Positions 47,165-49,894 of a stretch of DNA of 64,000 nt are shown here, piece by piece. Location of the stretch: NCBI GenBank assembly GCA_021613535.1, contig CP075496.1, positions 12,338,001 through 12,402,000 on the forward strand, read 5' to 3'. The DNA comes from Adineta vaga. Taxonomy: Eukaryota > Animalia > Rotifera. The translations under genes and the position numbers were made by a program. Position 1 is the stretch's first letter. The number at the start of each line of letters is the position of its first letter. Under the pieces are notes generated by a model that was not told the origin of the DNA, did not search any database, and saw nothing but the letters and a program-made list of their open reading frames with translations.

Positions 47165-47719
47165 ACCAATTGTGTTCTTTTTCATCATTATATTGACTAA
47201 TGAATAATAATGATAGGATAAAATACGATTAAGTTAATAAGCATATTCTACAAGAACTTTTCTCTACAAATCTCTTGACAATTTCGTTTTTGATGATGTC
47301 AACAACTGACAAATAACTAAATGTCATCAACCTTAAAAAGCCCATTAATCATCTCTGATAAACTTTGTCTATCAATATATTATACAGACACTTATTTCAA
47401 TTATTTTGCTTCGACACAGACTCTCTGCACCTACTATATATAGATATTCTAAATTTACGTACACACACAATCAAGAAGATACCAATAACGATACTTTTTT
47501 AGATAATATATTTTATAGCTATTATTATAAATGCTTTTATTTAATTACTTAGAAGAACTGAATTTAATATCAGAATGACTGTTTTACACACGTACAGAAA
47601 TCTAAGAGAACAAAAAAAAAAGATCACCGAATAGAAAGAAATGATTGAATTAAGAAGATTTATGCAAAGAAACATAAAAACCGAATGTTCATATATGTAA
47701 TTATTTATGTAAAGAAAAG

Positions 47720-49548
47720 TTAATTTTCTCTATTTAATGTTTTCTTTCGTTTAACATAGCTTTCTTCAATAGCAGCTATATCTGCATTTTTTGTTATCCA
47801 AACATGTTGAGCAACATCTTTTAAAGGTAAACGATCGGATGGATTTCGACGAAGTAACTAAATAATTGGATTTTAAAATGAATATTTTCAAAAGTAAAAG
47901 ATGATAAAAATTTTACTTTTGTTATTAGATCACGAAGATCAGGTGATGTTCCTGTAGGAAAAGTTAATTCTATCGATCGTATCATTCGAATAGTTTCATG
48001 TTGAGTTTGACTATCGAATGGTGGTTTACCAATAATCTATTAGAAAAAGATTTGTAAATGAATTAATCAAAGATATAATCGAAATTCATTACCATTTCAT
48101 AAGTGAGTACACCAAGACACCAAAGATCGATTTTTTCATCATAACCATTTCCATTAAGCATTTCTGGTGGAAGATAATCTAATGTACCGCAGAGTGTCGT
48201 TCGTCTTCGAAAACAAAAAACAAATCGTATTCGTTTGAAAATACAGTCATCTTTTAGAATGATCTTACTTGCATGTCGATGTACTTTCAGCTGACCAACC
48301 AAAATCCGCTATAACAAAACAAAAGTAAAATATATATAATCGAAAGAAAATAATCTGACTATTTCTACCTAATTTTAAAATTCCATATTTTCCAATGAGA
48401 ATATTCTCTGGTTTAATATCTATAACAATGTAATCGTTATATATTTGATATTTCTTAAATTATTCAAATATACCTCTAAAAAAACCCAGAGATTAGATAG
48501 ATTTTACATTGAAATTGATATTCTTACCGATGAATAACTCGTTTTGTATGTAAATAATTCAGAGCATTACAAAGTTGATAAACATACTAGAGAAATTCAT
48601 GGAAAAGAATAGATAAAAAATTAAAAAAACGTATTAGAAATTCATACTCCAGCAGCTTCACTTTCACGTAAAGTTTTTTCTGTTTGCATACGTCGATATA
48701 ATTCTCCACCAGGTGCATATTCAAGTAATAGATAGATTCGTTGTTCATCATGAAAAAAGCCATAGAGACGTAGAATATTTGGATGTCTATAATCGATCTA
48801 TTTGTTAATAATTAAGCGACGAAAAATAACACACTTGAACATACTTAAGATTTGATTGAATTTCAATTTCACGTTTTACTTGTTGTTCCATTTTAGAATT
48901 TTTCAATTGAGCTTTAAACAATATCTACAAATGAACATTTTATGTAGAGATAAAAGACAAATAGATTTTGATTCAATTACTTTAAGTGCGACAACAAAAC
49001 GTGTTTGTTTCTCTCGACCACAATAAACATAACCGAATCGACCACGTCCTAATAAATTACCAATTTCAAAATCATCAACTGTCCAACTTGATGTTTTTCT
49101 AGAATAAATAATCATTTCGAAATATTACATTTCATTTTTCTACAGAAGCTACATACATGGATTTTTTCTCTTCATTATTATTCGATATGACCATGTCTGA
49201 TGAAGGTGGTGATGTTGGTGATATTGTAGTAGTATCTGGTCTTATTAAACAAGAAGAAAAAATGATATTAAAAACAATACTATCATTGGTTAATATACTT
49301 TATTTGTATTTCTGTTGATGGAAATGGTGGTGAAGACATATTCTCTTTAAATTCTTCATGATCAACTAGTTCAGTTGTTACTGTGACTTTGTCTACAGGA
49401 GCAACAGGTGCATTATTGTTTGTGACAGGTTTACTTTGTGAAGTTTGATTGTCCTGTTGTTGTGGTTGTGGTTGTGATTGTGATTTTGATTTAATTTTGA
49501 ATTTGATGATGTTTTATGACTTGAAAAGAATCTTTTAATTGCAGACAT
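47720..49548 (-). CDS. AURK: Aurora kinase, multi-exon; start at 49548 (requires a 1-nt correction) or at 49339
   Basis: [74 protein letters not shown] and [16 protein letters not shown]. Confidence 0.93.
48474..48475 (-). other. 2-nt exon (AG) within the HRD motif of Aurora kinase
   Basis: cat cg|gtaag..52 nt..tttag|AG|gtatat..54 nt..tatag|at att aaa cca; only this path gives H-R-D-I-K-P-E-N using GT-AG introns. Confidence 0.85.
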
Positions 49549-49894
49549 GAAGAATTATGTGATAAATGAAATAAAATCATTAAACACTGGTTAATTCTTT
49601 GTTTCGAGCCTGACGAAAATATGCACGAATGAAATTCATGTGCGCTACTTTCCATTCATCAATTAAATAATCATCGAAGAAACTTTGAAATTCATTTAAA
49701 AAGACGAAAAAGAATTTCAAATGAAAATAATTATTGAAAATTTTTTCTTAAACTTTTCTATTATATTTGAAAATGAGGTTCGACTGTTAAGGATGATTAG
49801 ATATCAATGGCAGACAGTGTGTTGACATGTTTACAGCTTATTAGCGAGTGACGACTCCTACTCATTTCTTTATTCATAACGATTCAAGCACATC

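Follow-up and report, generated by a model that had tools for sequence, protein, structure and literature searches.

A probable 2-nucleotide exon within the catalytic HRD motif of a bdelloid Aurora kinase

In the bdelloid rotifer Adineta vaga, the HRD motif of one Aurora kinase is most probably assembled with the help of an exon of only two nucleotides. According to this reading, to which we assign a probability of about 0.9, the dinucleotide AG at positions 48474-48475 on the minus strand is a constitutive internal exon between two U2-type GT-AG introns that would be spliced out stepwise, the second intron having been gained beside an older one. All positions refer to the window, that is, the whole stretch of 64,000 nucleotides that was analysed. 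The window is AT-rich (ca 30% G+C), and the gene lies on contig 4 of a genome of 100.8 Mb in six contigs.

The gene, a C4-type ohnologue of 12 exons, occupies 47720-49548 (minus strand), with the start ATG at 49548 and the stop TAA at 47722-47720; its joints are those of spliced contigs from four sequencing runs together with the translation. The joined protein model was used for the translation and for a local alignment to the ohnologue L002, while the database searches were made with single exons or protein identifiers. Searched singly, the exon pieces match Pkinase, and the activation-loop exon has only Aurora A, B or C among its 60 best PDB matches. The translation contains the motifs GRGRFG, HRD and DFGWS with the activation loop, and its homologues carry the name Aurora kinase. 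The NCBI protein P0163 (I4U23_021112, "hypothetical protein", Adineta vaga) is the same model except at the site discussed here, where it is wrongly built.

The RNA evidence consists of assembled contigs from four runs of four different studies, three of organism A and one of organism B, placed on positions 47700-49600. Contigs of this kind drop rare variants, and minor isoforms could thus escape them. The same spliced transcript was obtained from all four runs, and at the site it joins 48528 to 48421, the mRNA reading CATCG-AG-ATATT. The HRD motif is thus intact in the mRNA and the gene is expressed. Full-length spliced contigs are found in three A. vaga studies with word depths of 23-138, and in the spliced model the open reading frame is unbroken through the kinase domain. 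The gene is an expressed Aurora kinase of Adineta vaga.

These results also bear on the possibility that we are dealing with a pseudogene, either unexpressed, which the earlier note names as one way in which its proposal could fail, or degenerating, with the split HRD codon as a sign of decay. Two observations could be read in this way, namely that a 2-letter excess in exon 1 of the reference assembly breaks the frame from the first ATG, and that HRD is missing from the public gene model. However, the excess is absent from all transcripts, full-length spliced contigs with an intact kinase-domain reading frame exist, and the exons are about 90% conserved in orthologues across genera. The spliced contigs of the four studies rule this alternative out, and we give it practically no probability.

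As to the excess itself, exon 1 (49299-49553), which contains a CA-rich repeat at ca 49448-49507, is two letters shorter in the transcript contigs of three studies than in the assembly. With the two letters removed, the first ATG (49548) is in frame into the kinase, and the 15-residue N-terminus that it begins is common to all orthologues. In the assembly, the frame from this ATG meets a stop, and the NCBI model begins at an internal Met at 49339. The 2-bp excess is likely to be an assembly error, or else an allele, in the short repeat.

At the site itself, the minus strand reads, in order, CATCG, a 52-nt GT..AG intron, AG, a 54-nt GT..AG intron and ATATTAAACC. Exon 6 (59 nt, 48528-48586) ends with GTT ATT CAT CG, i.e. 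Val, Ile, His and two bases of Arg, its end at 48528 being GTTATTCATCG. Intron 1 (48476-48527), the older of the two, has the form gtaaga...CTAAT...tttttttag, and its position recurs in L002, L006 and L017. The 2-nt exon follows, its A being the third base of the Arg codon CGA and its G the first base of the Asp codon GAT. Intron 2 (48420-48473), gtatat...gttatag, is the younger, gained one, and exon 8 (51 nt, 48369-48419) then starts with AT ATT AAA CCA GAG AAT, the rest of Asp followed by Ile-Lys-Pro-Glu-Asn, its start at 48419 being ATATTAAACCAGAGAAT. Both the sequence and the coordinates given in the earlier note are exactly as read in the window. Translation likewise bears out its two products: with AG included the protein reads H-R-D-I-K-P-E-N, whereas its omission gives CAT CGA TAT TAA, a stop.

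The lengths of the two introns had been called typical, and this holds approximately. The nine other RNA-supported joints of the gene are all GT..AG with skips of 56-64 nt (mean 59), so that 52 and 54 nt are near-typical, while an intron of 106-108 nt would be an outlier. When the 108 nt are shuffled with their composition preserved, a central YAG-NG-GTR split with both parts at least 40 nt long arises in only 0.13% of cases.

It is important to point out that the contig aligner did not place a 2-nt exon here. For all four contigs it gave one skip of 106 nt with GT..AT ends (AT..AC on the plus strand). Since intron 2 also ends in AG, the A. vaga letters alone do not distinguish between a 2-nt exon and one intron at 48527-48422, excised in one step, in which case the AG of the mRNA would be the last two bases of what appears to be intron 2. 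This non-canonical intron was the other route by which the earlier note could have been refuted. Its support comes from the aligner's layout, with which the A. vaga mRNA letters are compatible, and from two spliced contigs of other bdelloids with unmatched genomes (L012 and L013), which also read CAT CGA GAT. Against it, already within A. vaga, stands its length of about twice that of every other intron of the gene.

The comparison across species is more decisive. Orthologues were collected in an unbiased manner, via a search with a 46-residue exon, protein homologue searches and contig look-ups in which the central motif was not required. The layout in paralogue and relatives had been proposed as a check, and the two-intron layout is indeed present in all seven orthologues found by protein similarity (A. 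vaga included), while the ohnologue has intron 1 only. The shared arrangement is CAYCG, an intron of 48-66 nt ending in Yn-TAG, AG or GG, then GTAYR opening an intron of 49-58 nt that ends in YAG, and AYATH. The middle piece is AG in A. steineri (introns of 59 and 52 nt), A. ricciae (51 and 49 nt), Rotaria sordida (66 and 51 nt) and R. magnacalcarata (60 and 58 nt), and it is GG in Rotaria sp. Silwood1 (L023; 58 and 52 nt) and in the Logan contig L005 (57 and 53 nt). Four further distinct metagenome loci have the layout, all with GG, although they come from a pattern scan that required the central motif and are hence a biased sample. Together, GG is found in six of 11 loci, namely Rotaria sp. 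Silwood1, L005 and the four metagenome loci. In A. vaga and in the ten other loci, both introns start with GT, end in a pyrimidine tract and YAG, and have a length that is normal for the genome.

What is kept and what varies in these loci argues against the single intron. Among nine aligned loci, the introns have ca 55% identical columns, compared to ca 90% in the flanking exons, and yet the pyrimidine tract, TAG, xG and GTAYR at the centre are present in all nine; over the 11 loci, the central polypyrimidine-TAG, xG and GTATG are kept while the rest of the intron diverges. By contrast, the two bases preceding the final AG of intron 2, which would be the terminal dinucleotide of the single intron, vary among orthologues (AT, GT, TT, CT), and thus there is no conserved 3' splice site at that position. 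In addition, the 3' end of intron 1 in both the ohnologue and D. carnosus coincides with the central TAG.

A further distinction is offered by the mRNA letters, as one-step excision can yield only CGA. The JGI metatranscriptome contig L019, from which every intron has been removed, reads CAT CGG GAT. Its nearest genomic relative is L007 (93%), which is GG-type, and the locus of L019 itself might lack intron 2. As intron 2 ends in AG in every locus and L019 reads CGG, the dinucleotide in the mRNA follows the middle piece. Taken alone, the CGA transcripts, set against the first six foreign genomic loci, all GG, would seem to speak for a single excision, but this argument is countered by the genomes with AG and by L019. 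As a side observation, a one-base difference in a T-run of L019 at 300-315 (GGATTTTTTTCATGAT) shifts the frame relative to the orthologues, and is probably a homopolymer assembly error.

Thus, the extra bases between the flanking exons are present in mature mRNA (four runs, four studies), and they derive from the middle piece, as seen from AG or GG across species, the CGG of L019 and the invariant AG at the end of intron 2. A single non-canonical intron would have a constant terminal dinucleotide and always AG in the mRNA, and neither is observed. Nor is this a nested (twin) intron, because the 5' and 3' signals of each intron are complete, independently of the removal of the other. The comparison across species hence favours two introns, as the earlier note had held, and excision in a single step is left with a very small probability.

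The relative age of the two introns can be read from genes in which only one is present. The ohnologue L002 (contig 1, 2184960-2186220) has all other intron positions in common with the C4-type gene, and at the site it has one intron of 47 nt, the order being CATCG, gtaaac...ttttag and TGATATC. This lone intron ends at the central TAG, so that intron 1 ends where the 2-nt exon model places its end and intron 2 is the extra one. A transcript of the ohnologue type (CAT CGT GAT) is found in run X5 of organism B, which means that both ohnologues are expressed. The kinase that the earlier note calls essential therefore has an expressed ohnologue, and this lies on another chromosome. D. carnosus likewise has intron 1 only, followed by TGATATA, as have the C1-type genes of two species, and Brachionus has no intron at the site. 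Since intron 1 is alone in the ohnologue, its relatives and D. carnosus, and Brachionus lacks both, intron 2 was gained beside a phase-2 intron that was already there, 2 nt downstream of it.

In a maximum-likelihood tree of bdelloid Aurora kinases, a C1-type clade is separated from a clade of D. carnosus and the C4-type proteins (support 93/96), and the Adineta and Rotaria C4-type proteins cluster together (96/95). Judged from these sequences, the most parsimonious history would be that intron 2 was gained once in the C4-type lineage, between the split from Didymodactylos and the divergence of Adineta and Rotaria. The alternative history needs two losses.

Possible sources of the gained intron were also considered. 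A whole-genome search with 71 nt around intron 2 gave no other copy in A. vaga at the sensitivity of BLAST, the intron matching itself alone, and an origin as a repeat, MITE or introner was rejected at that sensitivity. As for tandem duplication, a visual comparison of intron 2 with exon 8 and with intron 1 revealed only short, AT-rich resemblances that are unconvincing. Separately, a C1-type bdelloid Aurora gene, L006 (JGI 3300047462), has at 835-1100 a G+C-rich insert of ca 260 nt within the intron after ...TYEM. Long terminal inverted repeats, cagagacccgcg...cgcgggtctctg, bound the insert, and gcagcgtaggcgtca is repeated in its interior. It resembles a foldback or MITE-like element, and the A. 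vaga ohnologue lacks it.

We now consider how such an exon could be spliced. With introns of ca 55 nt, recognition probably proceeds through intron definition. U1 at a 5' splice site pairs across positions -3 to +6, and at the 5' site of intron 2 it would overlap with U2AF and the AG recognition at the 3' site of intron 1. If so, the overlapping sites could not be occupied together, and the introns would be removed one after the other. Should intron 1 be removed first, the remaining 5' site would be CGAG|GTATAT, which is intact; should intron 2 be removed first, the remaining 3' site would be tttttttag|AGATATT, also intact. Since each intron keeps complete signals, either order would yield the right product, and the order is not made obligatory by the sequence. 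The claim in the earlier note that the exon demands ordered splicing is therefore overstated: simultaneous spliceosomes across 2 nt are indeed implausible, but a fixed order is not required when either one works with complete signals.

In this scheme, the exon bases would double as positions -2 and -1 of the 5' splice-site consensus (AG|GT or GG|GT). In all 11 loci the exon starts with A or G, while the three homologues with intron 1 only have T at this place. This is suggestive of selection on a purine at position -2 of the 5' splice site, although the loci are phylogenetically non-independent.

It had also been proposed that the exon serves as an on/off switch. In this scenario, skipping of the exon or zero-length use of the site tagAG|gt would produce CAT CGA TAT TAA, a target of NMD, and in this way the level of Aurora would be tuned. 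In the skipped product a stop would follow at once, the sequence tagAG|GTATAT of the AG-type species fits a composite 3'/5' site, and a minor dead isoform could escape assembled contigs. However, where the earlier note suggested comparing included with skipped forms in RNA, only the included form is found: the 108-nt skip that would give the dead form occurs in none of the assembled contigs of the four studies, although these could miss rare forms. Moreover, the second AG is gone in Rotaria sp. Silwood1, L005 and the four metagenome loci, which have GG, and just this synonymous base distinguishes R. sordida (AG) from its close relative R. sp. Silwood1 (GG).

The part of the proposal that stands is thus the presence of a composite site in the AG-type species, while its absence from the six GG loci speaks against the zero-length recursive site as a general feature. 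The AG is moreover retained in the mRNA, and a second AG directly before GT occurs in AG-type loci only, which does not correspond to a zero-length recursive site. GG-type loci can form neither the tagAG|gt site nor the dead product, so that a switch is not a conserved function. The NMD switch is accordingly not supported, with only the included form in the contigs of the four studies and about half of the orthologues being GG, and we regard it as improbable that the exon doubles as one. A conserved regulatory role of the AG exon is unlikely from the sequences compared, though a minor one confined to a single lineage is conceivable. One can speculate that in AG-type bdelloids a regulated choice between the first and second AG, or skipping, might turn the microexon into a post-transcriptional gate by which one of the Aurora ohnologues is switched on or off, e.g. 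in desiccation arrest and recovery, but this too is improbable.

The earlier note expected that gene predictors would miss the exon, and the public models in six species are in fact broken. In the A. vaga model P0163, an intron of 85 nt is placed wrongly at 48454-48538 (minus strand; inferred by matching P0163 to the window sequence), which deletes Val-Ile-His-Arg, and the rest of intron 2 is read as 11 residues. The A. steineri models have HRSIIVDIK and HRDIISIVVDIK at the site, and those of A. ricciae, R. sordida, R. magnacalcarata and Rotaria sp. Silwood1 are garbled or skip exons. The only correctly predicted model is that of D. carnosus, which is without intron 2. More widely, every public model of a C4-type Aurora is wrong at or around HRD, in the six species and also in Rotaria sp. 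Silwood2, with intron-derived residues inserted, the HRD motif lost or exons skipped (P0163, P0157, P0160, P0167, P0161, P0164-P0166, P0168, P0169, P0171, P0273 and P0275).

Very short constitutive exons have been described elsewhere. The plant genes APC11 and VPS55 have constitutive exons of 1 nt (PMC4674806; PMC8831610), and the resemblance is close: in each case an ultra-short exon of a length not divisible by three lies between two canonical introns of a gene with a cell-cycle or housekeeping function, has been conserved in many species and escapes annotation, there are homologues without a flanking intron, and stepwise intron removal has been proposed there too. The present exon differs in having 2 nt, in occurring in a bdelloid animal with introns of ca 55 nt, in contributing to a codon pair of a catalytic motif, and in that its origin can be dated as one intron gained beside an older one. 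In Fusarium, the gene CYP621A has a 1-nt exon (PMC12940212) that was spotted via an apparent intron of about twice the median length, as could be done here, although that case is fungal, involves 1 nt and belongs to another gene family.

Human MPC1 has a constitutive microexon of 4 bp (PMC9929638), and as described in that source it is, like the present one, an animal microexon of non-3n length needed for the reading frame; unlike the present one, it has 4 bp, lies among long introns and is recognised via exon-definition elements. Zero-nucleotide recursive sites, or ratchet points, occur in long introns of Drosophila and vertebrates (Duff 2015 and Sibley 2015, as cited in PMC4674806). They share with the present site the adjoining of a 3' and a 5' splice site and the stepwise removal of two halves, but here two bases stay in the mRNA and the whole region measures 108 nt, not tens of kilobases; the GG-type orthologues are without the composite AG|GT, and true zero-length use would here give a dead mRNA. 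A recent review gives animal microexons as 3 nt and up. In the literature searched, we found no described 2-nt exon and no rotifer case of any kind, although PMC12940212 does cite exons of 2-5 bp in Arabidopsis, Drosophila and human (Volfovsky et al. 2003).

The layout suggests a simple rule by which more cases could be found, namely to look for apparent introns that are twice as long as the mode and have YAG-NN-GT at their centre. For kinome and orthology analyses, the consequence is that, given wrong active-site models, these Aurora kinases would be scored as catalytically dead. For the evolution of introns, the site offers a clean and dated example of a gain 2 nt from an existing intron. 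As regards splicing, it would mean that spliceosomes acting on introns of ca 55 nt tolerate an exon far too small for both flanking complexes to coexist. The dinucleotide is well supported as an animal nuclear exon of 2 nt, conserved in at least two bdelloid families, where it splits the HRD motif of a mitotic kinase.
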